64,000 nt of DNA from Auanema rhodensis (Eukaryota; Animalia; Nematoda). The notes under the pieces are model-generated. The model made no database searches. It saw nothing but the letters and a program-made list of their open reading frames with translations, and had not been told where the DNA came from. Within the stretch, counting starts at the first letter, position 1. Every line of letters begins with the position of its first letter. Shown here piece by piece: positions 14,513-61,116 of this stretch. The stretch is from NCBI GenBank assembly GCA_964057225.1, contig OZ059897.1, positions 16,058,001 through 16,122,000 of the forward strand, given 5' to 3'. The translations under genes were made by a program, and so were the position numbers.

Positions 14513-17500
14513 ATGTACTGCAAATGGACTGCTGTATGTGTAGCCGTACCAAACAAAGAAATTAATAATCTTATAGAAAAGGGTAATTTAATCTTTTTTT
14601 TTTCTCACCTAATTTATTTATCTCTTTTTTTTTTACTTTTTTTAGTATAATAATTGTAAAAAAATTAATATTTCTCTCTTTAATTACTTTTTTTGACTTA
14701 TATTTTTTTTTGCTACTTAGAGTTTGAACTTTTACGTCAGTTGGACCAGTTACAAACTGATGAACTTGTAATCGTTGAAGATGCATGTCAAGATGTTGGA
14801 TCTGCCGGCAGTGCATTGAATGCTCTTCTGATTACGGTAGCATGATTTACTTGTATAGTACATCTTGAAGATTTTTTCATCTTTATTTTTAAAAATATTG
14901 TTGTAAAAGGTAGAACGATTATGTGCTCGGCGTGGTTATCAAGTTCTACACGAAAATGTTTTGGAAACTTCGAAAATTTTAATTATTTTATTAGTATGAG
15001 TATGTTGTTTGATATTATATTGAAAATTATTTATTAGGGTCATGAATCTAATGCTTTCAAACCATTATCTGATCCAGCTGTCTGGTCAACGTCACCAAAT
15101 ACCGTAATCTGTAAAATTATTAAAAATATTACAATGTTTGCAAGGAATACAATTAATGGTGTATGGATAACAGGTACATATTTAATATTTAATTATAAAA
15201 TAATTTAATTAATTTGTAGGAACAAATTCAATTTTTACTTTGAATGAACCATTACCAAACATTGTTGTTGAGCCAGATCACATAACAGCTTTTTCATTTA
15301 AAGGGGATACCCTATTAGCTAAAACACATGGTTCATATATATTGGATGAGCAAGTATGTTAATCGAATATCTTATAATTCTTCTTTTTTTTTCTACTAAG
15401 GGAAAATTTAAAAGTCTTTCTTATTGTATATCTGATGATGAAAAAACTAAAGAATATAATATAACTCTTGGATTATTATATTTTCCACCAATGATATCAA
15501 TTGCATTTCTTCGTTTACATTCATATCCACCTATATCAGCAACAACATATCATGGCATTGATACAGGTACAATAGGAATGAAGGTAAATATTAAAATATT
15601 GATTTTAATAAAAATATTATTGATTGATATTAAGCTTTCATTATTTTTTGATTTGGTTCAATCATCTGTTTTGAATGAACAAGAATTCATGAAAAATGAT
15701 TTTGGTTTATGTAAAATAGAACGAAATATCGAAAATCGTCGTCTAGCACGAGGCATTATTCATAAGAAATTTTGTAATTTTCATTCTAAAATAGGTAAAA
15801 GGTTATGCATTTATATGAGATTTTTAACATAAATGTTGTTCTTAGTTTGTTTGGATATCAAAAATTATGAATATTTAATGGATGATAATGATATTCATGT
15901 TGAAACTGATGATAATAGGTTTAGATATTCATGTGTGGTGTTTCAAATATTTTTATATTTTTATAGGAAAAAATGGATGAAATCATTAATAACGAAAATA
16001 GCAGATTATGAAAAACCATGTGAATCATTAATGGAAATTATATTAAAGATTGATATAATCTTTGATTCAAAATATTTATCAAGTGTTATTGAAGCTTTGA
16101 AGACATCACTTGCACAAGGTTTGTTCATTTGATCGGAAATTGAAATTAGATGAAAGTAGCTTATATTGAAGAAAGTATAATTCAGCATTATGCTCACACG
16201 CTCTATGTACTATTTTTAAAGATTCGAAATAGTTATTGGGCTTGAACTTTTGAAATTGCTTAGTTTTCAACAAACGAGGCTATTTTTTATTGAATTTTGG
16301 ATAAGAGAGAAAGATTGCCTAGTGTTACTATTGAAAAGGGTAGGATAATATATAAAATAATACTTGATGAACTCGAAGGTTTCTTTGAATTTTTCATACA
16401 ATTGAAAAAAAAGGAAAATATAAGGTCCCGGGGAGATTTGAACTCCCGTCGCAGGATTCAGAGTCCTGAGTGCTAACCGCTACACCACGGGACCAGCCGA
16501 GAGCGAGACCATCCTGTCAAGCCCTTTTTCTCGATATCAGCACTGTAAGACATGAATAAACTACTTGACTAGTGCTTCTGTCTAAATAAATTGAAAAGAA
16601 GTACACTGATTTTTGAAATATAACAGTACAAGTTCAGGAAATCCTTCTGATACTATGAAATTAGCTTGTACATTTTCAAGAATGGCTGATTTGATGATGG
16701 TCAAATCAAAAGGAGATGGAGGAATAAAATCTGGGCCTGCTGCAAATCCTGACTTCTCTGAATATTTTCATCAAATTCGAACAGTAAATTATTTATTTAT
16801 ATTTATATAAAGTATCATAGTTAGTTATTTTAAAAAATATATGATTTATAGGCTGAAAATGAGGTTGAATTACAAGATGTTTGTAAACGATTATTCGATT
16901 TTTTGCATAGCAATTGGTTCAGTTCACCGATATTACTAGTTCGAGGTTCTCGACATTCTGATGCTGCTGTTCAATTGTTAATTAGCCGCTTGGTTTTAAA
17001 TGAATATAAGGTGAATATTAATTAGTAATTTATTAAAATTATATTTAGTCTGTATGTAATTATCCCAGTGTTATGGATTCAGAAACATCAAAATCTGAAA
17101 ATTTACCAGAGAATGTTCGCGTAAATGGAGCAGCTAGAGTGACTAATCTTTATGAATATTTTGATTAAGATATATATATTTAGATTGACCTATGTGGTGG
17201 ATGGTTAGATACCCCACCAATAACTTTTATGGTTAATAACCCAGCTGTTATTAACATGGCTGTTTTATTTGAAAATCAAGTATACTCAATATAGAGAGGT
17301 ACAGAAATATTTATGTTTTTTTTAGCATCCACTTCATTGTTTTGTACAAAGATTTTCAATTGGAATTGGTATCGAAATAATAGTAGAAGGAATGAATATA
17401 CATTTGCATGATGCTGATCATATCTTACAATTAGCCAGACAACCAACACAAGCTGGTCAGTATTTGTTCAAGTTTATATTTTAGGAATTAAGTTGTTCAG

Positions 17501-35679: not shown

Positions 35680-38600
35680 TTACATGATTACACATCCTTC
35701 ACCTTCATCTACATTAGATATTGCATGATCCTTTCCTCTATCTACACTTCGACTACGTTCTCGAGGGCGGAAGCTTTCTTGCAGATGTTTTCCTCTTCCA
35801 ACTCGTGGTTCACCGTTAATCAACGACGTTCCATCTACAAATAGAACTCATAGGAATGTATCTAATACACAGTGAAGAAATATGTACGCATTTCACTGGG
35901 ACTAAGTTTGCAGAAGTAGTTGCATTTCAGACAAAAATTAACGTTATCCATTAACTTTTCGAACTTTCCGACAAAACAAAAGAAAAAAACTAACTTGGCT
36001 TTAATCCATTTGCAACAACGCTTGACTTCACAAGTGGACGTCGCGGTGGAAGATTCAAGCAGCCAGCTTGATCAGCAACAATATCCAAATGAGCGGTGAA
36101 TAGTTGGAGGACTGATACATAGCCAAGACTAAAAAAAAAACATAATTCACAACAAAAATTCAAAAACAAAATTTAATATACCAATTTCTGGTAGCCCATT
36201 CCATCAAGCTCAGTGCTCCAAGACGAGTCTGTCCAAAAGCCTCGATACCCCATTTGTTAATAGTCGCTGCTGACACCTCGTTCCTCAAACGTGTTATATC
36301 TCGACATATAACACAAAGCTAAATCATCAGTAAATGAGTAAAAGTCTAATATATATCGGATTACCAGGAAAACCCAATCGATAGCTGAAGCATCGGAAAA
36401 TAACTGTATCAAGTAATTCATTTGCAATTGACTTTCACTAGGACCGCGACTGTTAGAATCTCCTAGCAGTACTTCAATTCCTGAAAGAAATTAAATTATT
36501 GTTATATTCAAATACAAATCAACCTTGATAATCGCCAGCACAACTACGCCCATCAAGGGTGTCCACAGTCTGGGCAAGACTGCCATCGGGAGAAGAAGGC
36601 CGTCCATTTCCATTAATTTCCGATTTTCCTGTAAAATTCAGTACGATTAACAAATAGCAGAAAAAAACGCCGACCCTGTTCTACAGGAACGAGATTTGCA
36701 ATTTCAACGGAAACGGATTCTGTAGTATCCGTTTCTGCCATGGTTAACGGTATGGGTAACGGTCCATCGTCGTTAGATATTTTAATAATCTTCTTTTCCT
36801 CGCTTTGAGCTATAAAGGTAAAAAAACGTAATATTAATTGTAACTATTTTATTTATATATACCTGTTAAGCAAGCAGAACTTCGGCTTATCTTCATCGAA
36901 CCGAAACGTTTTTCCAGATGATCAACAAAATGTTTCCCTGGTACTGGATATGACCAAGAAAATTGAGAATGAATCCGAGTAAGAGCAACCGGAAAATCAA
37001 GAATCGGTCTTTGAGCCATTAACTTCTTAATATCGAGGTTCAAGTGAGCACAAAGATAACCTATAATTTTTAAATGAACAGAAAATAAATTAAATCATAA
37101 TTACCAAAATCTCTTATGCAATATTCGTCTAGAAGATGGCGAGCATGCTCATCAAGAATTTGATCCATTTTTTCGGCCATAGGGTTGCTCATTGAAATAG
37201 GGGAAGGAGGTGATGTTTCATTAGATAATGCCTAACATGAGCAAATATGTTTAATTAAATTTGATAACATAATAATCTAATACCCGGCCGACTTTTTTTC
37301 CTGATCCACTCGAATCTTTCCTACTGCTTTCTTTATGCTCTTGAGAATGACGAACTTTGTTCACCCGAGCTACTAAAAAGTAAAATACTGCTTAATACAA
37401 AAAAATCATATTTAATTACCAGCTTGAAACCTAGAAAAGACTAAATCACTTGTTTCGCCGCCATTCAAAGATATCGATGCAGTAGGTCTCCTAGAACAAG
37501 GCTTTTGTGGAGGAGGTGTTCTACAAATAATTTTAAGTATGCAAGTTAGAACATTTATGATACCTTGAAAAATTATCCATATCTTCCGCATCAATTGATC
37601 GAGCAAATCTTACCATATCAGTCGCTGTTGTCCATTCGCCAGCTGATAATGCCTCTCTTAATAATCGAGCAGCTTGCTTCAACCACGGATATTACAAAGA
37701 TTAATAAGTTAAAAGCAACCTCAAGACTTATTTGAGCACTTTCCAAGTTTTGTAGTACAATTAAGTAACTGGCGGCAGTTTCAAGTTGACCATCTCTTAA
37801 ACAAACCTAGAAAGATATTTTGCATCAAGAAGCACAAAGTATATCCTTTTACTTCGAACAAATCATTAGGAGATCCTGTAACTTCAAACAGAGATGACCA
37901 TAAAGCTAATTCAGTTTTTCTTGCACAATGAGCAACTGTTTTTAGAAATTCAGGAAACTCTTGAATAAACGCGACACAGCGAGGCAATAAAGGATCTGAA
38001 ACACAGGAAATTATGTATTAGGATATGATACTTTTAAAAATTACCCGGAATAGGTTCGCTACTGGTTGCTTCTTCTTCCAGCACACTATGAAGTAAGAGC
38101 TCAAGGGAATGAGAAAAATGAGGAAGCGATCGACAAGCTCCAGCAACTTCTAATGCAAATACGCCCAAATTTCTTTTTAAAAGTTGGCGTAGAAGATGAT
38201 GTACAAAAACCTTAAGCAACAAATAGGATTATTACAAAATATGGTAGAGTAACTTCGCTATTCCTTCCTAAACTGTATGTTCGAATATTCCTATCATGTC
38301 CCAAATTCATTTGTAGTAATACAGATTCTACTCCTACAGCTAAGCAATCGTTAGCATAAATCACTAGAAATGTTGTTCAAAAAATACAGTTCTTATAGAT
38401 AGATAGTACCTGCGGGGCAAATATCTAGCTCAATTGGCAGCATAATTCTTCGGGATATGAATGAAGTATCTTGTACCATTTGATTACGTTTACTGGGAAA
38501 TAATGGTAGCCAGACCTTAAAAAATACATATGATGAAGTCGTAAACCAATTTAAACACATACCTTCATTCCCTTTGTACCACAATTAATCCAAAGAGCAT

Positions 38601-41389
38601 TTCCAAGATGATCTTGTTCATCTTCTGCATAATACTTGCGAGCCCTATCATGCCAAACTTGTTCAACAAATGATGCTATAATGATGGGCTGGCTGAGCTG
38701 AAATAAATTGATATTATACGAATTGGCATTGTGCCCTACTTGGAAATATTCATCATCTTCTTTTGAAGCATTTTTAGGATTGAGTGTGATTAAGCGTCCA
38801 GAAACATTCACAAGTACTGTATCAACACCGGGGCAGAAAGTACCGCCTGTTTCCAAATTCAGCTGTGTAAGTTGTAATGACACAAGACAAGCCGGATGAG
38901 CAATTAAATCTCCAACCCGTATTTCAGCTAATTTTTCTAGTGAGACCTAAAAGAAAAGCAACGTTTAACAAACTATTAATAAAGTATTCAAACCTTCGCT
39001 ACTTCGTCAGATTTCCCTTCGTCATTCCGTCTCATTTGAAATAGCAAAACTCTTCCTTCAACATCAAATGATACCAGTGTACTCTCTCTGAACGAATATT
39101 TAAAAAAAAGAAGTTAGAGATCTTAATCACCTAACACTCAACATCAAAATGCGAGATTCCGTTTCAGTTGATGAAGCAAATCTATTGTCAAGTTTTGTTG
39201 ATAAGGGATAAAACTTAAGCAACTCTTTTGAAGAGTTTGTGTCAAAGCAAGCAGCCGCTACAGTACCGTTCCAAACAAAAACACCGCCAGTTACAATCAT
39301 ATCTCTCTCCTATACAATTTTATTAATGATAAAGTATATTAGGGGCAATTCACTTGGCTTTCATTTCCGAAGATTTTCCATTTACTTAGCGTTATATTAC
39401 AATAAGCTAATCCTCGAGTTCCAGCAACTACGAGTACATTTGGATTTTTGTTATCGAAAGTAGCAAACTGAAAGTAACACATGAAATTTATTAACAGTCA
39501 AAAAAATTACTCGAAGTGGCCAATTAGCCGAGATGTATTCATGTGGAACGCAATAGGAAGACCAAACTGATTGTGGTGCAGTAGCTGAATCTTCTCTCTC
39601 GCGTGGAGGACTGATCAGCACTTTCGAACCTGTCATCATCACAACTCTATCACTATGCTCCTAAAACTCCAGCATTAAAAATCTTGAAAACTTTCAAAGT
39701 CTACCATAGCGGGATTCCCAAGGGTTGCTGATCTAGCAAGAGAGATAGTTGCCAATCCATTAGATTTTCCCAACCAAAGACAGAACCCTTCAGGTCCCCA
39801 ATCAAGTGTAGTATAATGAGAACTAGAGCAACTATTCCTATAACATTTTTTTTAAATATAGCACTTACGAGTTAAGACTCACCATTCAATTATAGACTCT
39901 AAAGAGCACCATGTTTGAGACCCATATGGAGTAAAAATAGCTACAGTGGGTGGTAAAGCTTTCTCAAGTGAACTTCCAACATTTTCATCTTCACTTTTAA
40001 CATCGGAAGAAGTATTCCAAACTGCAGCTATGGCACAACCAGAAGATAATATTTGGATTCTTGCCACAGCTCCTATTCGATTAGAAATTTCTAAAATACC
40101 AGAGAAAGGTAAATCTACAAATCAGAGTATTCACCTGGGCCGTTCGTTACATGTAGCGAAACCCTAAATGTTTGTACTAAAGACCCATTAGAGTCATCAA
40201 GATGATAAGCAGCTATGTCACCACTATAATTTTTTAAATAGTAAAAGTTAACAAGAAATAAAAAACTACTTAGCACATCCGAAAACCAATGATCGAAACT
40301 TGTGATTGACATCAGTGCAAACGGCGTCCTTCAAATGCAAAGCCCAAACGCCAAGAATACTCTATAATAAATCAAACCAACTTTTAAACAAAAACAATAA
40401 AAAACAAACATTGGGATGGAACCTTGAGTCCGAAGATGTTAATAAAGCTCCACGACCATCCGACAAAACAATGCAATAACCACCAACTAAAGGAGCATAA
40501 ACAGCATCAACAGCATGTACGTGAGGATCATTAATATAGTCGGCTAAATTTAAACAAATATAAATAATTGAAAACAAGTACTTACGCTTTGACTGAAGCT
40601 GATCATGAGCAAATGGCACAGAAGCTAAACGTATAGAGTAATCTGTATGAACTGACCCATCCCATCCAATATGATGGCAGAAACCGTTACGTATACACAC
40701 CAATAATTCTTCTCGTAAAGGAACACAACTTAAATTATTAAAATAAAACATAAAATAGTGAAAACAAAGAAAAGCTAACCAAGTCGCTGTAGCTGCCAAA
40801 TTTATAACAACTGATGGGTATAATGATATGATAGGAATTTCAGATCGAAGAAAGAGGTCCTTAAACAGAATCAACACTTAACTGATAAGAAAAAAATGCT
40901 TACCTTTGAAGTTCGATGTGAATAGGATGAAGAACTAGATAAATTGTAACAACTTTCTGATGAAACATCTACTTGATAAATTAAAATATGATTTCGAGAT
41001 GTCTGAAAAAGAAAACAATATTAGATTGCTAATTTCTACGTACCGTAACAGCAATTGCTGTAGAATTATAACGCCAATAAACTTTTTGAAGTGTTCCTCT
41101 TTCTAAGACATCAGCTTCAGATAAACGAAGAATACATAGGAGAAGATGAGGCTATAAAACTTGAATATTAAAGTTATCGCTGCAGTAAACTAACATGAGA
41201 CAGCCATATGTAGACTGAATCTTCGGTAGCTACGGCTACAAAATTTTTTTCTCTATTTGAGGCAAGGGAAACAACAGGACGAGCTTCAGGAAAACCATCC
41301 GGAACGGGCAGGCTTAATGTTACTTCTTGATCAACCTTAAAACTACATAATTAAATAATTTTAATATACAGGTGTACCGGCAGAAACAT
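35680..41389 (-). CDS. RIC1: RIC1 homologue (Ric1-Rgp1 Rab6 GEF subunit), many short introns
   Basis: Starts MFLP-VDQ. Contains [103 protein letters not shown] and [13 protein letters not shown]; ends EGCVIM*. Confidence 0.95.
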
Positions 41390-50922: not shown

Positions 50923-52666
50923 ATGGACCTTAGTCTGTTGATTCTTCTCGTTTGCGTTCTGATTGCCGTATGGCTTCTCCGGTACATCGCTAGTGTTTTC
51001 ATGGAAAAAATCGAGGTTTGTGGTCGAACATCTGTCGAATCTTTCATCCGAGCATGGCCCATAAGCTGTAGTGGTCCAAATGAATGCTACAGTGGGAGGT
51101 TGTGGTGTAGAAAGATACTAGAGATATGAAATTCGATATAAATCGATTTTTGCCCGATCCAATGAAAAATATTTGATTGCATTCGATGCTGGAACAATGA
51201 GAAATAAGTATTGACTAGTAATAGTTAATAAGAATTCATAGATCGGTAAAGGCCTTGAGGCTGAACTGGTTACAAGAAGGTCACACACAGGACTCCTTGG
51301 GGGAACTCCTTTGTTAGTCACACACATGGCGCGCAAAAGCATGTTCTAGCTTCTTATTGAAGCTATCTATGTCAAAAAGCCGGTGGAAGTGGTAGTTGTG
51401 TTGGGAATCAGCATCTTCCTAATGTATTTTCTTTCTTTTCTATTTTCTTTCTATTGTCTAAGCATCCCTCTACCCCCTCAACTTTTAACCTCTCGTGGAC
51501 AATAGCTGCTTCTAACATAGCAGGGACATAATTTTTATGTATACGAATGTAAATTTCCAAATCGCAAATGAAGTGATATATAGAGAGAAAACTTGGAAAT
51601 TTCAAGTGAATAGATGATTTCTTCGTCATCTTTTAGTTGATATCGCTTTAAACCTTATGGTTTAGTTGTAACAAACTAAGGTGCTTCTCGGGTGGTCGTA
51701 ATTTCAAACCCACAAACATCATATGAACGTTGAAACAGGGTTTGTTATGATTGGGAGGAAAGGGACAAGGGGCTTATTATTTAATTTTAAAATGAATGTC
51801 ATAAAAAAGATTTTTTTTTACTGGAGAGAAAATGGTTTTTTACTTTTTTTTTCAGCCATGCATCACTGAAAGCTCTAAGTACCTGTCTTCACCTTTGACT
51901 GTTTACTACAAACATCGTGTTGGTGCTTACAGTGGTACTGCATCTATTTGCCAGGAGGTAATTCATTCAGTTTTTCTTTTTTTTACATATTTTCTTATCA
52001 AAAGATTAAATCTATTTTGCCAAGTGATTGCGTAACATTTGGAATTTTTTACGATTCTCCAGAAGATGTCAAAGAACATCTTCTCCAATCCGCAGTTGGA
52101 GTTGTTTTTTCTGGTAAGAAAATATATAATTCAAACTTTAAGTGTATTTTTAATTTATCAGTTGATGGTAAAAATCTGTACAGTGATAACTATGCTCAAC
52201 AATTAACACGTTTCGGATTTGAAAAGATGAATATCTCCAAAATTGGAAGAACTGTTCAAGTTACACAATCCAATAAAGGTTTCCTTTCCTTCTTTGCTCT
52301 CATCTCCTACACATATCCAGCTATTAAGAAATATATTGAGGTAACTAAAAACAAAATGAAAAATTTAATCTTTTTATCGTTTTTAGACTCATCGTCTTGA
52401 AACTACCTATTCCATGGAATTCTACTCTCCTGATAAATTCTACGTATATTTCCCATTAGAAAATGCCGAAGAACTCTGTGTGCCTGAGGTTTTATTCATA
52501 ATTGTAATTGTAAACTGATAGTATTTTTCAGTACAAATCCGTTGATAGATTAGAAGCTGATCTTGCCAAGAAATGTTTTGATTCAGACCAGTCTGACAGC
52601 GAGAGTGAGCCTGATACAGATGTTGATAGCGACGCTGAAGCCGAAGCAATCAACGAGCAAAATTAG
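50923..52666 (+). CDS. TEX264: TEX264-like protein (N-terminal TM anchor, GyrI-like domain, acidic tail)
   Basis: TTTTTCAG lies before the ATG. TM segment MDLSLLILLVCVLIAVWLL, then LTVYYKHRVGAY, FGIFYDSPEDV, QSAVG, RFGFEK, TYPAIKKYI, MEFY and FPLENAEELCVPE, matching the TEX264 motif order. Acidic tail, TAG at 52664-52666. Confidence 0.85.
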
Positions 52667-53110
52667 GATTTCACCTCTTCCAGAGGACTATTCTGTGCTC
52701 AATGTATTCTTTCAAATCCCGTAATCTTTCTATCTGTGGCTATCAAATGTAAACACTGCCTCTACTTGACACACTTTCAAAATAATTTTTCTATGATTAA
52801 GCTATATTAATCAGATTTATATCATGTACATTTATTGAAAGTTTCTAGATTAACTAGACAAGTTTTTTTTCTCCCATATCAACGTCATCTTTCAGATTCA
52901 AATTCATATAAATTGGTGCCACTATGTATAAATGTTTATAAACTTTTTCATATATATTATTATTATTTTTTCCGGTTCAGAGATGGTGATTATAAAAACT
53001 GGAGAGAAAAATGATTAAGAAGATGAAGTATCTTTACTTACTATCACGCCCATCTAGTGAACACAAAATGACTTTTGTTGTAATGGATAACTGTTACCTT
53101 ATTATCTCTT

Positions 53111-53113
<3 letters not shown>

Positions 53114-53165
<52 letters not shown>

Positions 53166-53193
53166 TCTCTCTCTTTCTCTCTCTCTCTTTATT

Positions 53194-53225
<32 letters not shown>

Positions 53226-53260
53226 ACTTTTTCTCTCTCTCTTTCTCTCTCTTGCTCTCT
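53114..53260. repeat. Compound (CT)n microsatellite
   Basis: Long interrupted CT run. Confidence 0.93.
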
Positions 53261-56200
53261 CGTTTTTCTTTTTCCCTATCTATCTCCTTTTCGCGGCCTC
53301 TCATTCTCACACTTTTCTTATTTTCCCTCGTAGTACTACTTTGTCTATATGTTTCTTTTTCCTCTTCAATTCATTTTATATATGTCACTCATCTTCTGTA
53401 TCTATATCCATCTACTTTTCTATTTGTAGCGAAAAGTATTTAGTAAACAGAAAATTATCTGAAACTTTAGTTTTCTTATAGTTTTATTTTAATCTTTCCA
53501 CATTTCATTTACGTTTGTTTGTACGAACAAAAAAACAATTTGTTTCCAATAATCAACAGAATCGTCTAACAACGATTAAATTTATCAATTTATTTTCTTT
53601 GTTTTCTTTGCTATAGTATCTTAAATTTTGCTTTTATTTCTTTTAAAATGAGCTAAAATCAATTCAGCTTGTAGTTTTTTTCGCATATGTATACACATGT
53701 ATGTACATGTTTATACAATTTTTCTTTTCGAAAAACTTCATTGGGCTTGTCATTTGATTTCTAAAAGATGAATTTAATAACCGTCTATTTTATTTGTTAA
53801 AGACATTTTACTTTCACCAACGGCGTTAAATCTATTTATTGAATTTAGTAACAAAAAAAGGACATGATGTTACTTTGTTTCACATGCGTATTCGATTTCA
53901 AGAAGCCTATAATTTGGTTTCCTGTTCGGATGAAACCTCACTTTAGCTTTGTGTTTCTACATTTTTCTAAATAAAGATCGTAGTATTGCTTTTTGTATTT
54001 TCAATGCATCATAAGATATATCATTTCTTCCTTTTTTTTAAAAAGAAATTGCTCTTTATTTAAACGAACGTACCGAGCAATTATTGTTAAGTGCGTGATC
54101 TCCACCATATAATCAACTATTTTTTCTTTCCTTTTGTTTTTTTTTAAAATAATGTGAATTAGTATTCTATATCAGTTATTCACTCACAAAACTACAATAG
54201 AATAATTTTCCTACTCAATACGTACTATAAATTATTCTTTTATTTCGATATTTTATACAAAAAAACAGCTTTTCATCTTTTGTTTCAAAAATACTTTTTT
54301 TTGAATAAAACGATTTAATTCTAATAAAATAAAAAAAAACAATGAGCTTTACGAATTTTTTCAAATCTCAAACTTTCGTTCATATATTACGATCATATTA
54401 TATTTTGATTCTTTTAAGAACAAATTCATTGTCAATTCATCTTAGTTTTATGAATTAAATCAAAAATTCCTGAATGTACTATCAGCTTCTGCGCAAACGC
54501 TTTGTTCCATTTGCAGACTATAAGGTCAGTTCGTCCAACAGCACAAATGCTCTATTTGCTCATTATAATTGATTGTTTCAATTTTTGAATTCATTTGTTT
54601 CGTTTTTTTTCAAATCCTGAATTTCTACATTCCAAAAGAAAGAACAACTTATATACGACTTTATATGTGAAAATTAACCCTTTGACTGACGAAATCTTGT
54701 CAGCTTGACACACGTGAAAGTTTTGAAGTTCAATAGTCTGTTTAGTTTTAAGCCTGAAGTATTTAATATTTTTCTTAATTATAATATAAAATGTTAGTTT
54801 GGGGATATTATATATATTTTTTTGCTCTTGAATACAATTGAAATATTATAGAATTACATGTTTTGAAATTACGAAGGCTTTTTCATTTTGGTTAAGCAGT
54901 ATTCTTCAGATCAAATGTATTCAATATTAGCATAGAATATAATATCCAATTCGTCACCTTCAATTATTTTTTTCATCTATGAAATAGCTTTTCATCAAAT
55001 TCTTATCTTTTTACTTTTTTAATTGCAAAAAAACGTCTGATGAATGTGGAGACTTGTATTCGATGTTATCCCTCTCACTATTCTCCTTCGTGCTTCATCT
55101 TCTGCAATACTCGTCGTGCTCCTCTTAATACTCCATCTTTCTCTTAATTCTCTTTCTCGCCAGCAATCTGTGCTTTTTCCTTACTTTTATTCTCTTTCAT
55201 TTTGCCCATCAGTACCACAGCATCACAATAATATTATAAATCATGAAAACAGATGGTAACTACGCATTGTTCTACGACATCAATTCATCTTCAAATCAAG
55301 ATTGTCTGTTTCCCCTAGCTTGTAAGAACTCAATGATTAGCTAACAGATTTGAACAGAGTTGTACTTCCCTTATGTAATTTGCAATAGGTCAATGAACTT
55401 CTAGTTCTACGAACATTGTCACATAGCAAATATCTATTTACTAGAAAAATTTGCGTATATTGTGTACGCATTTCACATTTCTTTTTAATATGATCAGAAG
55501 AATTTTTGGAATGTGAAAATTTGTCTGAATTTCCTTGTTCAAAATCGCAAAGCTATTCGCTTTTGTGCATTTTCTCTGTTTTTTAATATAGTCTTCAACG
55601 TCACTTCATGCTTCTTTTTGTCATTTTTTTTCGAAAAGAAGGGGCATTTACAATATTATTCTTAATTATGTTGTTCTTTGCGTGAGGTAATAAAATCTCC
55701 TTTTGAGGATCATTTTACTTTTATTTTCTAGGTTCTAGGTATACATATTACCTCATTTTATTTATATAATATATCCCAAAGGTCTTTTTATGTACAGAAT
55801 AATCTTTATTATTTCTTAAAAAAAACATTTTCAGCATCACTAGACAGAATCAATATACTAATGTAAGGTTTAGCTTGTGGAGCTGCATACTATATCGTAT
55901 TTTGTTGATTTCTTTGTCTTCTTTGATTATAATGTTAGCCAAAATAGAAAGAAAACATTAACAACATCTTACAGCATTCACTGAAATTATTTTTGAATTT
56001 CGAAAATTAGCTTCGTACGATGAAGCGTTATAAGTTGTTCAATGCATTAAGCTAATAAGCTTAATCAACTTAGCTGCTTTTTATGCAATCTTTTCATTTA
56101 TTCTTTCTTTCTTCTTCTTTTTAACTATTTGTTCAAATTTTATATTATTTTTGAAAGTGACTTTATCAAAAACGGTAAACAATTATATGGTTTATTCTAA

Positions 56201-57894
56201 GTACTTTTATAACAGAACTTAAAAATAAATTTGTTTATTCACTATTAAATTGTATTAAATTTAGTTTTTTTGAAGAATGAAAAGGAATGATATGAAAGAT
56301 TTTTAATGTATGTATATGAGACAGTAAATTTAAACATTCACCATTTTATTTCCTTTAATTGAACTTTGTAACAACTTCATTTATTTTTGTTACAGAAAAA
56401 CAAACGTTTATCTCTTTATTCATTACATTTATGTTTTATTATCTGAGATGAACTTATATTGACTAGTATATATTCGTATACTATATAGAATAAAAATAAA
56501 ATTTAAATATTTCTAAGATAGACTCTGTATTCATTTGTTTTTTTTATCTGTAATTTAAGTATATAAGTAGTAATTATACTTTTTAGATTCTTCATATATT
56601 TTATTGCAGTGTGAAAGAGAGATTGAATTCTAAAGAGGAAAGAGAGAGAGAGAGGAGGAGGAGAGAGAGAGAAAAGATGAATATAACGTGATAGGTGAGA
56701 ACGATGGTTGAAAAGATGCTAAGAGAAAGAACTCATTTCGTTTCTCTTCTTTATTTCAATTCAACCATTTCATTTCTATAGCTGTCGTCCCTCTTGAGAT
56801 AAGCCTTATAGTCTTGGGCCTTTATTATGAATATTCTAGTCTGGTAAAGGTTTCCAATATTCTTTGTTTTCTCAAGGAATTTTTTCCCATATTTTTATGA
56901 CTCTGCTTATAATTCTACTCGAAATAAATTCTTTTTGTTCCAGTGTGTCGTTAGAATCTTTTTTTTTTTTAAGTTTTTTCACTATCTTTGAAAAAGCTGA
57001 AAATGAAAGTAAAGAAAGACAGCCAAGTAAAACAATTCTTCTTTTAGTCTTATTTTCCACATTTCGTTGTTAAAAAAATATAATTGGTTTCATGTAGAAC
57101 TTTTTAATTTCCATCATCATTAACTCTTTGAAAGTGATTAATGGGCGAAATGATTCCGAGTATTTCTTTAATTTTGTGAATTTTTTATTTATTATTTGTT
57201 CATATCTTACTTTATATGCTATTTTTCAAACTTTTAAACACTTTGTTTTTGATTAAAAACAAATTCTGAACCAGAATTAAATGATATACCCCACATTAAA
57301 ATTATCTTGTTTATTATACATCATCAACACTTCTCTAGCTTTTCCTGCAATATTCAATAGTTCGAATGTTATTCGTCGCTTTTACTTCTTTTTTCTACTT
57401 TTCAAAGCTTATTTTTGTTGTTATTGAACTGAAAAGAGCTAGATTAAAAGAGCTGGATGGGCTCCATAAGCTGAACACTGAAGTTTGTTTAAATATGTTT
57501 GGTGAAGTTTCACTATTTGCCTTTAAGTTTTACATTTTTTTTATACATAACCTATCTCAATGACATTTGAAATTCGTTATTTTATTTTAAATTTATTAAA
57601 GAATTATCATTTGTTTTATAGCAGAAGTTACTACCGTAACTATGTCTTTATAAAATATTTTATTCACATTTTAAATCGAACTTTAACATATGGTACTTTA
57701 AATCTTATTTATAGCCTTTAAAAAAATTGTTCACTTCTTTTAAAACTACAAATCCCTTCAGAATTGTAAACAGGTACTTCAAAAGAATGATACTTAAGTA
57801 TCATCAAATGATCCTCTTAATCATATATATTATAGTTACACATGATATATCAATTGTGCTTTTCTTTTTGTTTTTGCCTTTCTCTTTACAAAAA

Positions 57895-58024
57895 CCGCTG
57901 TCTCAGTGGGTGCTATCCTTCTGATCGAAAGATCGGCCCACACCGTTGTGGACACACACTTCCGACCATCAGCACACATCTCGGCCGATTTCAGGACCCC
58001 TGCACGATTCCTCATCGACAACTG
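57895..58024 (-). ncRNA. 130-nt box C/D guide RNA (snoRNA/scaRNA-like); predicted U6 snRNA 2'-O-methylation guide (SNORD94-like)
   Basis: Terminal stem CAGTTGTC/GACAGCGG. Box C TCGATGA (58018-58012), D' CTGA (57994-57991), internal stem ATCGGCC/GGCCGAT, C' TCGATCA (57928-57922), D CTGA (57906-57903). TTTTT follows immediately 3'. The D' guide GTGCAGGGGTC pairs with U6 GGCCCCUGCGC. Confidence 0.8.
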
Positions 58025-58116
58025 TATAAACACATAGCCACGTGTGGCCTCTCTGTGGAATTGAACCTCAGAGTAGTGAGATCAAATAGATTGCCAACCA
58101 CTATACCAGATGCTAC
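58025..58116 (-). promoter_or_regulatory. tRNA-like Pol III internal promoter/leader (A box + B box) upstream of the C/D RNA
   Basis: A box TGGTATAGTGG (58108-58098). B box GGTTCAATTCC (58067-58057) sits in a T-arm-like hairpin CTCTGAGG/CCACAGAG. There is no intact acceptor or anticodon arm. Confidence 0.78.
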
Positions 58117-59621
58117 TGCATGATACCTTAAAATTTTTAGGTGAAGGTTATATCTTGAACATTTAAAAAACATAATTAATGTATTTTATAAATTATATTT
58201 ACGAGATGTGCAACGAGTAATTAGATTCATCTAAACAGAGAGAAAAATAATTTTTTTTCGTTACGAATGTTGTTAACTAATACAAAAATAATTTTGAAAT
58301 CTAGTTTTTCTTCTCGTATCTCATGCACAAATCAAATAAGTTTGAAATTATTGACATAACTTTACTAACAAAATGTAATAGTGATCTTTATGTTTTCTTT
58401 TAAATGATCAGTTAAAAAAAAGTATAAATTTAAAATTTTTTTATAAATTAGTAAGATTATAAATATTTTTATAGATTTCTTAAAGTACTTTCCACAAATC
58501 AAATATTTAATTTGTTTTTCACTGTAGGTATTACATATAGAATTTTATTAGTTTATTTCCATAAAGTTTAAAATTTTAATAAATTAAAATTATTGAAAAA
58601 AACTACTAAATTCTCTATTTATACGAATTTTAAATTAAATACAATCTGTTTCTATAACATTTAAAATGAAAAAGAAATTCAATTTACATCTTCTTGACTT
58701 TGAATAGCTTATTACCTTTTAAATGTTGTCCTTCATGAATGTTCTTTGTATGTTATTTGCCATTCAATTTGATCACAATTTTACACAATTTTTCAATGTT
58801 TTCAAGTTAAATGTATACATGTATGTAACTCTAAATGGCGTTGTTACTTGTTTTTTCTTTGTTGTTACTAGGTAGTTTTGAATTTTGTTATCGTGATTGA
58901 TATACCTTCATTTTCTTTTTCTTATGTTTAACTCTCAAATCTTAATATTTTATCTTAACTAGATCATTTCTTCTCAAAATATTTACTTTTTTGATGTTAT
59001 AGTAATATCGTTTTCTTAGAAAGTCAAATATTATATTGAAGTCAACTCAATTTCTTGTTAAATTATATAATTTCCAATTTTTAAAACAAATAAACTTATC
59101 TTATTTACATATTTTATTTATTTAAACCTTGTGTAGTACTTTATACCCAAAGCAAGTCTGGATCCCAACTTTTAGCTCTGCTTGCTATCTTAATCAGTAT
59201 TCAGTGAGATGACTTAGTTATTCTTTTATTCAACGTTATCTTATTTTTTGTCTATTCATAATTATTTCCGCATATATTCTATAGAAATTCTTTTTTAGTT
59301 ATTAAAATTTATTTTTTAAATTCTTTTTCTCATGAATTAATATTTTTCTTCTATATTTTCTTTAAATCTTCATGTTTTTCTAGAAATCTTTTTCTAGAAA
59401 TCGTCTTTTACATAAAACAATTGAGGTTATAAGACTTATGAATGATTTTCTTATAAACTCTGCCTCAATTTATTCTTCAATTGCTTCTATTTCCATCCAA
59501 TCTTGTCCACATTTCCTTGTCCATAGAATGTCTTTAATGATATACATATGTATATGATTCATACTTCTATATTTTTTTTTTCAATCTTAAACTTTTTTAT
59601 TTTATTTTTTTAATTTAAGAT

Positions 59622-60580
59622 ATGGAATATACACATGTGAATGCATCTTTTGTTCAATCATTTCCTCAACTTGTTAATTATCATATTATCAATAGTTGCC
59701 TTGGAACATTATGTTTTATTGTTAATATATGTTTAATGATTATTTTTCTATCAACACCTACCTTTAGGAGTAGATATGTTGTAAGTTTATACTGTATTTA
59801 TTTATTTATATAAATAATTTGTAGAATTTCTTTTTATTAACAAATTTTCTTTTAAACGAACAAGATATCGAAAAAAAATACTTTTGAACAAAGATTCAAG
59901 TTTTATTTCAGCTCCTAATTCAACTTTGTACTGCTGATCTCATTAATAGCGTTGCTATTATTCTTACTGGTTTAAACCGAATTGCATTATATTCATCAGC
60001 TTACCATACTCAAAGTATTCCAGTACGAACATCGTTTCAATGTTCCCAGCAAGGATGGTTAATATTGAAACTAATTGGTTAGACTGCAGTTATGAAAATT
60101 TTAAAAACTCAGAATGTTTTAGGCGATTTACTAATTCCGATTTCAACCTTTTGGATGGGTTTTGAAAGGTTTACAGCTATACATTTTCCTTTATTTTATC
60201 GTTTTCGTGTAGATGGTAAAGCTGTTAAGTAAGTAGTATTAATTTAATCTATTTTAATGTATAATAATCTATTTTCAGATATTGTATAATACCTGGTCTT
60301 TCTGCTACATTCGTTACTTTATCTATAGCTGGTGGACTTTATATATCATATACTAACAATCATATAACTGGATTTTATTGTGGAAGAAAAGCTGCTTTTG
60401 GAGATGGTTTGAAAACAATTTTTTTAAATATTTAGCAATTTTAATTTACATAGGTTATGGAGCTTTCATCTATATCTCAACTATCACATTCAATTGTTTA
60501 GCCACATTATTAAATGCTGCTTCATATATAAAAGCTACAAAAATGGCTGCAACTCAGTAAGATTTATAACTAGATAATTA

Positions 60581-60662
<82 letters not shown>

Positions 60663-61116
60663 AATTATGGGTAAATTCAAATTATTTCCAGATCTCGAAT
60701 GCAGAAACAAGTTGCTATTATTCGTTATTATCTATGTATATCTATACTATCAACTTTGCTTGTTTCTTTACCAAACTCGATAGCTTTATTCCAATTATTT
60801 ATTAAAACAGTAAATCTCGTTGTTGAAAGCTAAAATATTTTTTTTCTAATTTAGGTTAGTGATTCTATATCGAAGCCAGCTTATTGGATGCAAACTATCA
60901 ATTCGGGGATACATTTCTTCGTTTATTTGGCCTTGAACAAAGATTTCCGTGGCAGAACCAAGAGAATGTTCAGTAATCGAAATACCGAAGAATCCATTAG
61001 TATGCAACTTACATTCTCAATATTTTCTATTTATTTATTTTTCAGAAGAAAAACGACTACCTTGTAAAGATGCACTACGCACTGAATGTCAAAAAGAGCC
61101 AACTCCATCAACTTAA
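59622..61116 (+). CDS. Class A-like serpentine GPCR (srsx-type nematode chemoreceptor), multi-exon
   Basis: Seven hydrophobic segments. TM1 N (FIVNICL), TM2 LCTADL, TM3 GFERFTAIHFPLFY, ECL2 CGRKAAFG, TM6 LLVSLPN and TM7 INSGIHFFVYLALNKDFR. Intact frame to TAA at 61114-61116. Confidence 0.9.
60582..60658. repeat. (TA)n microsatellite inside a GPCR intron
   Basis: Perfect TA run of ~77 bp. Confidence 0.95.

Follow-up and report, generated by a model that had tools for sequence, protein, structure and literature searches.

The locus and the layout of the unit

The DNA analysed here, which we call the window, is a stretch of 64,000 nucleotides from the nematode Auanema rhodensis in which a TEX264/GyrI-like gene and a gene for an Srsx 7TM receptor border an intergenic region of ~7 kb. 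On the minus strand of this region (58121-57890) lies a compact unit consisting, in this order, of an A box, a B-box hairpin, a spacer hairpin, a box C/D RNA and a TTTTT run (Table 1). The first-pass annotation of this DNA had proposed the same succession of motifs, with an A box and a B box in a T-arm-like hairpin placed ahead of a C/D RNA and a TTTTT run, and every one of them was found at its minus-strand place; the RNA, which had been put at ~130 nt, proved to be ~126 nt long, bounded by a terminal stem and carrying boxes C, D', C' and D.

Table 1. Features of the unit and its surroundings in the window, with nucleotide identity to the ortholog of Auanema sp. JU1783 (contig L102)
Feature	Position	Strand	Form or evidence	Identity
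TEX264/GyrI-like gene	51826-52636		tblastn; L102 10290-11211	
Srsx 7TM receptor gene	59619-61022		tblastn; L102 13975-15316	
tRNA-Gln, unrelated to the unit	16423-16494		ARAGORN	
Upstream flank				30/102
Predicted Pol III start zone	58117-58121	minus	9-13 nt upstream of A box, inferred from C. elegans UM2 5' RACE	
A box TGGTATAGTGG	58108-58098	minus	sequence motif	8/11
A-B spacer				12/34
T-arm-like hairpin CUCUGAGG/CCACAGAG	58073-58051	minus	7 bp, one A.A mismatch; folding	
B box GGTTCAATTCC	58067-58057	minus	inside hairpin loop	10/11
Spacer hairpin GGCCA(CACG)UGGCU	58049-58036	minus	folding; A. rhodensis only	
Box C/D RNA, ~126 nt	58022-57897	minus	boxes, SNORD94 full-model match, ortholog	
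Terminal stem UUGUC/GACAG and one extra G-C pair	58021-58017 with 57902-57898	minus	5-6 bp	
5' stem, box C, guide and D'				29/30
Box C AUGAGGA	58015-58009	minus	one deviation from RUGAUGA	identical
D' antisense element (guide) GUGCAGGGGUC	58005-57995	minus	adjoins D'	identical
D' box CUGA	57994-57991	minus	perfect sequence motif	
D'-C' hairpin AUCGGC...GCUGAU	57989-57968	minus	compared with Auanema sp. JU1783	21/24
C' box UGAUGG	57971-57966	minus	degenerate sequence motif	
GU-rich stretch	57951-57980		in the middle of the RNA	
Middle of RNA				14/41
Second conserved antisense region AUCAGAA..AUAGCACC.A	57927-57907	minus	upstream of box D	16/21
D box CUGA	57906-57903	minus	perfect sequence motif	
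Box D and 3' stem				7/9
T5 run, presumed Pol III terminator	57894-57890	minus	TTTT at same place in Auanema sp. JU1783	
Downstream flank				9/46
RNA contig X1, 256 nt	57891-58146	unstranded	no differences	
RNA contig X2, 251 nt	58017-58267	unstranded		

The RNA is built as box C/D guides are, with box C near its 5' end, box D near its 3' end, a short terminal stem, and a guide of at least 10 nt that abuts D'. An alternative register for box C, (c)GAUGA, was considered and rejected: the ortholog in Auanema sp. JU1783 (described below) reads cUAUGAGGA at this place, and box C is therefore taken to be AUGAGGA.

The leader that precedes the RNA resembles a tRNA in its two promoter boxes. ARAGORN reported no tRNA at the leader, and in the whole window only an unrelated tRNA-Gln; nor did the Rfam tRNA model, applied with a cutoff of E<=10, match anywhere over 57600-58400 or in the Auanema sp. 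JU1783 locus. The leader has no acceptor stem, the 7 nt upstream of the A box being without a partner after the T-arm-like hairpin. Read in this way, the leader is a decayed tRNA-like promoter and not a tRNA.

A syntenic ortholog in Auanema sp. JU1783

An ortholog of the unit was reached by way of its neighbour: one ORF of the GyrI-like gene (51948-52397), used as a query, led to the TEX264/GyrI-like protein of Auanema sp. JU1783 on a contig (L102) that tblastn showed to be collinear with the window. The GyrI-like gene, the Srsx gene and the gene next downstream of Srsx all match between the two, and the exons of the two species share 50-94% protein identity. The ortholog lies between the GyrI-like and Srsx genes, on the minus strand at L102 13311-13443, in the same orientation as in the window. 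Because the unit is intergenic in both Auanema species it is free-standing, as had been suggested from the A. rhodensis sequence. When the two intergenic regions (~7 kb and ~2.9 kb) were compared by blastn, the 5' half of the snoRNA alone matched outside repeats (96% over 50 nt, E 3e-18), all other matches being CT/GA microsatellite.

Conservation between the two species follows the motifs (Table 1). The guide and the D' box are identical (11/11 for the guide; chance 0.03), while spacers and flanks are 20-35% identical overall and the leader around the A box 29-35%. The A box of Auanema sp. JU1783 is weak (AGGTATAACGG), and its B box is the sole B box of its 21-kb locus; the gap between the two boxes is 30 nt in the window and 34 nt in Auanema sp. 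JU1783. The terminal stem keeps 4/5 of its pairs, and TTTT stands directly after the 3' stem. In the D'-C' hairpin all three differences fall in the stem and include a compensatory change of C-G to U-A and a change of G.U to G-C, so that a comparison of two sequences may lend the hairpin weak covariation support. A guide RNA that carries two antisense elements and is read from a type-2 Pol III promoter would be expected to leave just such a footprint. Boxes and guide, then, recur in a related nematode as the first-pass annotation would have them do, in a syntenic setting and with the guide unchanged.

The same comparison bears on two further features. In Auanema sp. JU1783 the snoRNA stem starts 4 nt past the B box, and the 31 nt that hold the spacer hairpin in A. 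rhodensis are absent; the hairpin is therefore present where it had been described, yet it cannot be a required processing signal, and by this comparison it is species-specific and incidental. We also considered whether the RNA might be a C/D scaRNA with a G.U/U.G Cajal-body element, and rejected this candidate: the GU-rich stretch of A. rhodensis falls in the poorly conserved middle of the RNA and is replaced by unrelated sequence in Auanema sp. JU1783, and the GU-rich hairpin is not conserved.

A covariance model built from the two sequences (R1) scored 152-159 bits on these, its own training sequences, as expected, and was applied together with a pattern search to loci from eight other nematodes, each comprising the same neighbour gene and 10-kb flanks (Mesorhabditis belari, Caenorhabditis nigoni, C. 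auriculariae, Ancylostoma caninum, Ancylostoma ceylanicum, Dictyocaulus viviparus, Cylicocyclus nassatus and Pristionchus entomophagus). None of the eight loci yielded an ortholog beside the TEX264/GyrI-like gene, and a permissive Rfam scan of the M. belari, C. nigoni and C. auriculariae loci gave no SNORD94 match; conservation at this locus thus rests on a single species pair, and the gene may lie elsewhere in the genomes of the eight. Caenorhabditis nigoni keeps the GyrI-like-Srsx synteny, yet has no ortholog at the locus. A metagenome scan for a B box, a box C and the U6 guide, in which few nematode contigs were to be expected, returned 101 loci; all are GC-rich chance matches in bacteria, either at tRNA 3' ends or in coding sequence, and no nematode homolog is among them. 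The spurious 93-aa ORF that covers the unit was also searched as a protein, for like mis-calls in relatives, and nothing was found.

RNA from the locus and the choice of polymerase

The RNA data are unstranded Logan contigs from three small runs of one study; that these runs represent RNA follows from the neighbouring Srsx gene, whose contig is spliced at four GT..AG joints. One contig over the unit (X1) carries leader and snoRNA together, with one end within the T-run and the other ~25 nt upstream of where C. elegans would place the start; a second (X2) reaches ~150 nt upstream of the A box. Contig depth over the unit is 3-5, against 35-43 for the neighbouring mRNA. The locus is represented in RNA, and one end of that RNA fits Pol III termination. 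X2 crosses minus-strand T5/T6 runs that should stop Pol III, and some of the RNA here must therefore be read-through or antisense; a sense X2 would not be the work of Pol III.

These contigs bear directly on an explanation that we consider unlikely, although not negligible, namely that a real C/D RNA with a real U6 guide is released from a longer transcript, made by Pol II or by read-through, while the conserved A and B boxes serve another role, for example as a TFIIIC-only site or as a relic. The upstream extension of both contigs beyond the predicted Pol III start, and their passage across minus-strand T-runs, speak for it; being unstranded, however, the contigs could be antisense RNA or background, and several features of the unit itself speak against it. 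Ten of the 11 positions of the B box are conserved although the DNA around it has diverged, and neither locus has another B box; in both Auanema species an oligo-T run follows directly after the RNA (T5 in the window, T4 in Auanema sp. JU1783) with no TTTT inside the unit; and in C. elegans mutation of the UM2 boxes cuts expression to 7-26% (PMC2527325).

The U6 guide and the second antisense element

The first-pass annotation had paired the 11 nt before D' with U6 snRNA by nine Watson-Crick and two G.U pairs. Set against C. elegans U6, whose template contains ...GCATGGCCCCTGCGCAAGG... (PMC11347140), the guide GUGCAGGGGUC forms just this 11-nt duplex with GGCCCCUGCGC. The fifth nucleotide upstream of D' stands opposite the third C of GGCCCCUGCGC, which is C57 in C. 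elegans numbering and the equivalent of human C62, so the predicted target position also holds, and the register of SNORD94 agrees with it. C62 is one of eight known 2'-O-methyl sites of human U6 (PMC5855946), and SNORD94/U94 is the vertebrate guide linked to U6 Cm62 (PMC6894857).

At gathering scores no Rfam family matches the unit. In a permissive scan the best match was SNORD94 (RF00613), which aligned over its whole 137-position model at 23.8 bits (E 0.0031); the cmscan alignment lays GCAGGGGUCCUGA of the window on GCAGGGGUACGGA of the SNORD94 consensus, and the guide keeps its register relative to D'. In the Auanema sp. JU1783 locus SNORD94 is among the two best matches, again at full length (22.9 bits, E 0.023). 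The other of these two, SCARNA7, sits on an adjacent (GU)n repeat. Both SNORD94 scores are far under the gathering threshold of 60 bits, and by score neither sequence belongs to the family; the Infernal/Rfam comparison thus brought out SNORD94 as best match and in the same register, at a score below threshold. Guide core and register, by which the D' guide of SNORD94 selects U6 C62, match in both Auanema species, the similarity lying mostly in boxes and guide, which a common target would impose too.

A second element calls for attention because the region before box D is 16/21 identical between the Auanema species, against 14/41 in the adjoining middle region. This contrast, and a comparison by eye in which no complement of the D-side element was seen in C. 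elegans U6, could be taken to mean that the complementarity of the D' guide to U6 is not functional, or not the sole function, and that the RNA acts mainly via the D-side element on rRNA, another snRNA or tRNA, or is an orphan. We regard this as improbable: the D' guide is identical between the species over all 11 positions and abuts a perfect D' box, it is directed, in precisely the register of SNORD94, at a U6 position known to be methylated, 0 such fits being expected by chance, and a second guide would add to a function on U6, not replace it.

Three controls speak to chance more generally. A relaxed A box followed within 25-45 nt by a B box occurs once in the 64-kb window and in 0/300 block shuffles, which makes the pair, kept in the ortholog, unique here and upholds its original description; a D' box preceded by any sequence able to pair with GGCCCCUGCGC, G.U allowed, likewise occurs once and in 0/100 shuffles. 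The 227-nt unit contains no TTTT before its terminator; of stretches of equal length in this DNA only 6.4% lack TTTT, and the unit's G+C content of 51% in AT-rich surroundings partly accounts for the absence. The stability of the whole-unit fold shows no gain over shuffles (z -0.24), and since C/D RNA folds are commonly no more stable than shuffles this carries no weight either way. That there is no gene here at all, and that short motifs have merely come together by chance in AT-rich DNA or a tRNA pseudogene, now dead, lies beside unrelated sequence, is extremely improbable, for although every box is short, the fold is unremarkable and no Rfam family reaches threshold, the shuffle controls are zero, the locus appears in RNA contigs, and a syntenic ortholog with a motif-shaped conservation footprint effectively refutes it. 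Its sequence and that footprint mark the unit as a real snoRNA gene under selective conservation, headed by a tRNA-like promoter of Pol III type and carrying a predicted U6 guide.

A model for the unit and what it would mean

Taken together, we think it probable that the unit is an intergenic snoRNA gene of the UM2 type, transcribed as a Pol III leader-snoRNA precursor that is trimmed and directs U6 C62-type methylation; in this model it is Pol III as the polymerase, removal of the leader and methylation of U6 that we infer. TFIIIC would bind the A and B boxes of the decayed tRNA-like leader, and Pol III would start ~10 nt upstream of the A box, producing leader and ~126-nt C/D RNA as one ~225-nt precursor that stops at the T5 run. 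The snoRNP proteins Snu13, Nop56, Nop58 and fibrillarin would gather on the C/D kink-turn, leaving leader and U-tail unprotected and open to trimming. The 11-nt element before D' would then pair with GGCCCCUGCGC of U6 snRNA, and fibrillarin would 2'-O-methylate the U6 cytosine equivalent to human C62 (C57 in C. elegans), as with SNORD94 in vertebrates.

More tentatively, and as a reading that we hold to be less likely than not, the U6-C62 guide (SNORD94) may be ancient in bilaterians, and nematodes may have moved it from an intronic Pol II setting to a self-contained Pol III unit. If this were so, Pol III would make both U6 and the guide that modifies it; the second antisense element, being conserved, would indicate a further target not yet described; and the acceptor-less leader, which in Auanema sp. 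JU1783 directly abuts the snoRNA, would imply release without RNase P or RNase Z.

Comparison with known systems

The unit may work like SNORD94, and shared ancestry and convergence on a common target both fit. The two are C/D RNAs of similar length (~126 nt against 137), and the D' guide of SNORD94, GCAGGGGU, shares its pairing segment on U6, its register and the cytosine that it selects with the guide of the unit. They differ in the spacing from box C to the guide, which is off by 3 nt, and in the D-side element, which is unrelated. The vertebrate SNORD94 gene is intronic and Pol II-dependent, whereas that of A. rhodensis is a free-standing unit with a Pol III-type promoter. Among nematodes, the literature searched, a body that lies outside the surveys of Zemann 2006 and Deng 2006, names for C. 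elegans only H/ACA guides directed at U6 and one C/D guide, directed at U5 (PMC1474057), and gave no nematode C/D guide for a U6 C62-type site; a C. elegans counterpart may already be described in those surveys.

With the dicistronic tRNA-snoRNA genes of plants the unit shares an upstream tRNA-like Pol III type-2 promoter and a downstream C/D snoRNA in one transcript, the joint transcript being a prediction in A. rhodensis. In plants, as Kruszka et al. 2003 are summarised in PMC2527325, a working tRNA stands upstream and RNase Z sets it free, whereas the leader of A. rhodensis lacks an acceptor stem and goes unrecognised in both tRNA searches, so that it does not have the functional tRNA of the plant type and recognition of the RNase P/Z type is doubtful.

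The closest likeness is to the UM2 class of C. elegans, which, in the account of Deng et al. 2006 given by PMC2527325, comprises 47 ncRNA loci, 40 of them snoRNAs, with tRNA-like A and B boxes 33 bp apart. Joint leader-snoRNA transcripts have been sequenced at four of these loci, with starts 9-13 nt upstream of box A by 5' RACE and termination at TTTT (PMC2527325), and PMC5364375, in its summary of Ikegami & Lieb 2013, reports ChIP-seq signal for Pol III, TFIIIC subunits and TBP on Box A/B snoRNA promoters. The precedent that the first-pass annotation had drawn from C. elegans, of snoRNAs preceded by tRNA-like Pol III promoter motifs, accordingly corresponds to a published class (PMC2527325, PMC5364375). 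As in that class, the A and B boxes of the Auanema genes lie upstream of the mature snoRNA and 30-34 nt apart, the leader is within the primary transcript (in A. rhodensis by prediction), an oligo-T run comes straight after the snoRNA, and an intergenic location occurs. The leader of A. rhodensis, from predicted start to snoRNA, is ~95 nt long, against ~70 in C. elegans CeN37, its greater length being due to the species-specific 31-nt insert with its hairpin.

The gene layout is thus that of the published UM2 class and is not new; the guide type, too, is already known, and no new mechanism is involved. What is particular here is the identity of the RNA as a predicted U6 C62-type guide, which supplies a concrete candidate for guiding nematode 2'-O-methylation in the U6 internal stem-loop region, and a clean two-species footprint which shows that in a UM2-type leader selection acts on the A box and the B box, not on the spacer or the hairpin. 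Our understanding of how UM2 genes work is unchanged by it, and its value lies in annotation, in a modest comparative insight into this class, and in the study of U6 modification in nematodes.

Conserved and variable parts of the box C/D RNA

An antisense-like element and a hairpin of the predicted U6 guide RNA were compared between the window and the syntenic ortholog in Auanema sp. JU1783 (contig L102). Immediately upstream of box D lies a second antisense-like element, AUCAGAA..AUAGCACC.A, conserved at 16 of 21 positions; comparison by eye with C. elegans U6 revealed no match to it. The GU-rich wobble hairpin, a possible Cajal-body signal, falls within the stretch of the RNA where conservation is lowest (14/41 identity), and unrelated sequence occupies its place in the ortholog. 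Judged from the two sequences, the RNA probably does not require this hairpin.

Surrounding intergenic DNA

Between the GyrI-like and Srsx genes, long CT/GA dinucleotide repeats are the sole other "similarity" between the intergenic regions of the two species. A SCARNA7 match in Auanema sp. JU1783 was rejected as spurious, being produced by the (GT)n repeat directly downstream of the snoRNA terminator. The intergenic DNA is otherwise silent around a 156-nt RNA-seq contig at window positions 55827-55982 (run X1, one of three small RNA-seq runs; depth 4.3), which is preceded by a ttttcag-like acceptor, had no noteworthy match in an Rfam search, and may be a piece of an unannotated exon or UTR.

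Features of the window and of contig L102
Feature	Sequence	Position	Strand
Canonical tRNA-Gln(CTG) gene	Window	16423-16494	minus
Exon matching RIC1 second beta-propeller (Pfam PF25440, E 7.8e-11)	Window	38554-38883	minus
CT/GA repeats	Window	53100-53290	
CT/GA repeats	L102	11430-12010	
(GT)n repeat	L102	13144-13309	
Element upstream of box D	Window	57907-57927	minus
Element upstream of box D	L102	13324-13344	
GU-rich wobble hairpin	Window	57951-57980	minus
Spliced Srsx-type 7TM receptor gene	Window	59625-61022	plus

Other genes in the window

The tRNA gene is the window's only Rfam gathering-level match. Four GT..AG introns of the Srsx-type gene are confirmed by RNA contigs, and the initial 16 letters of its contig, absent from the window, could derive from a trans-spliced leader.
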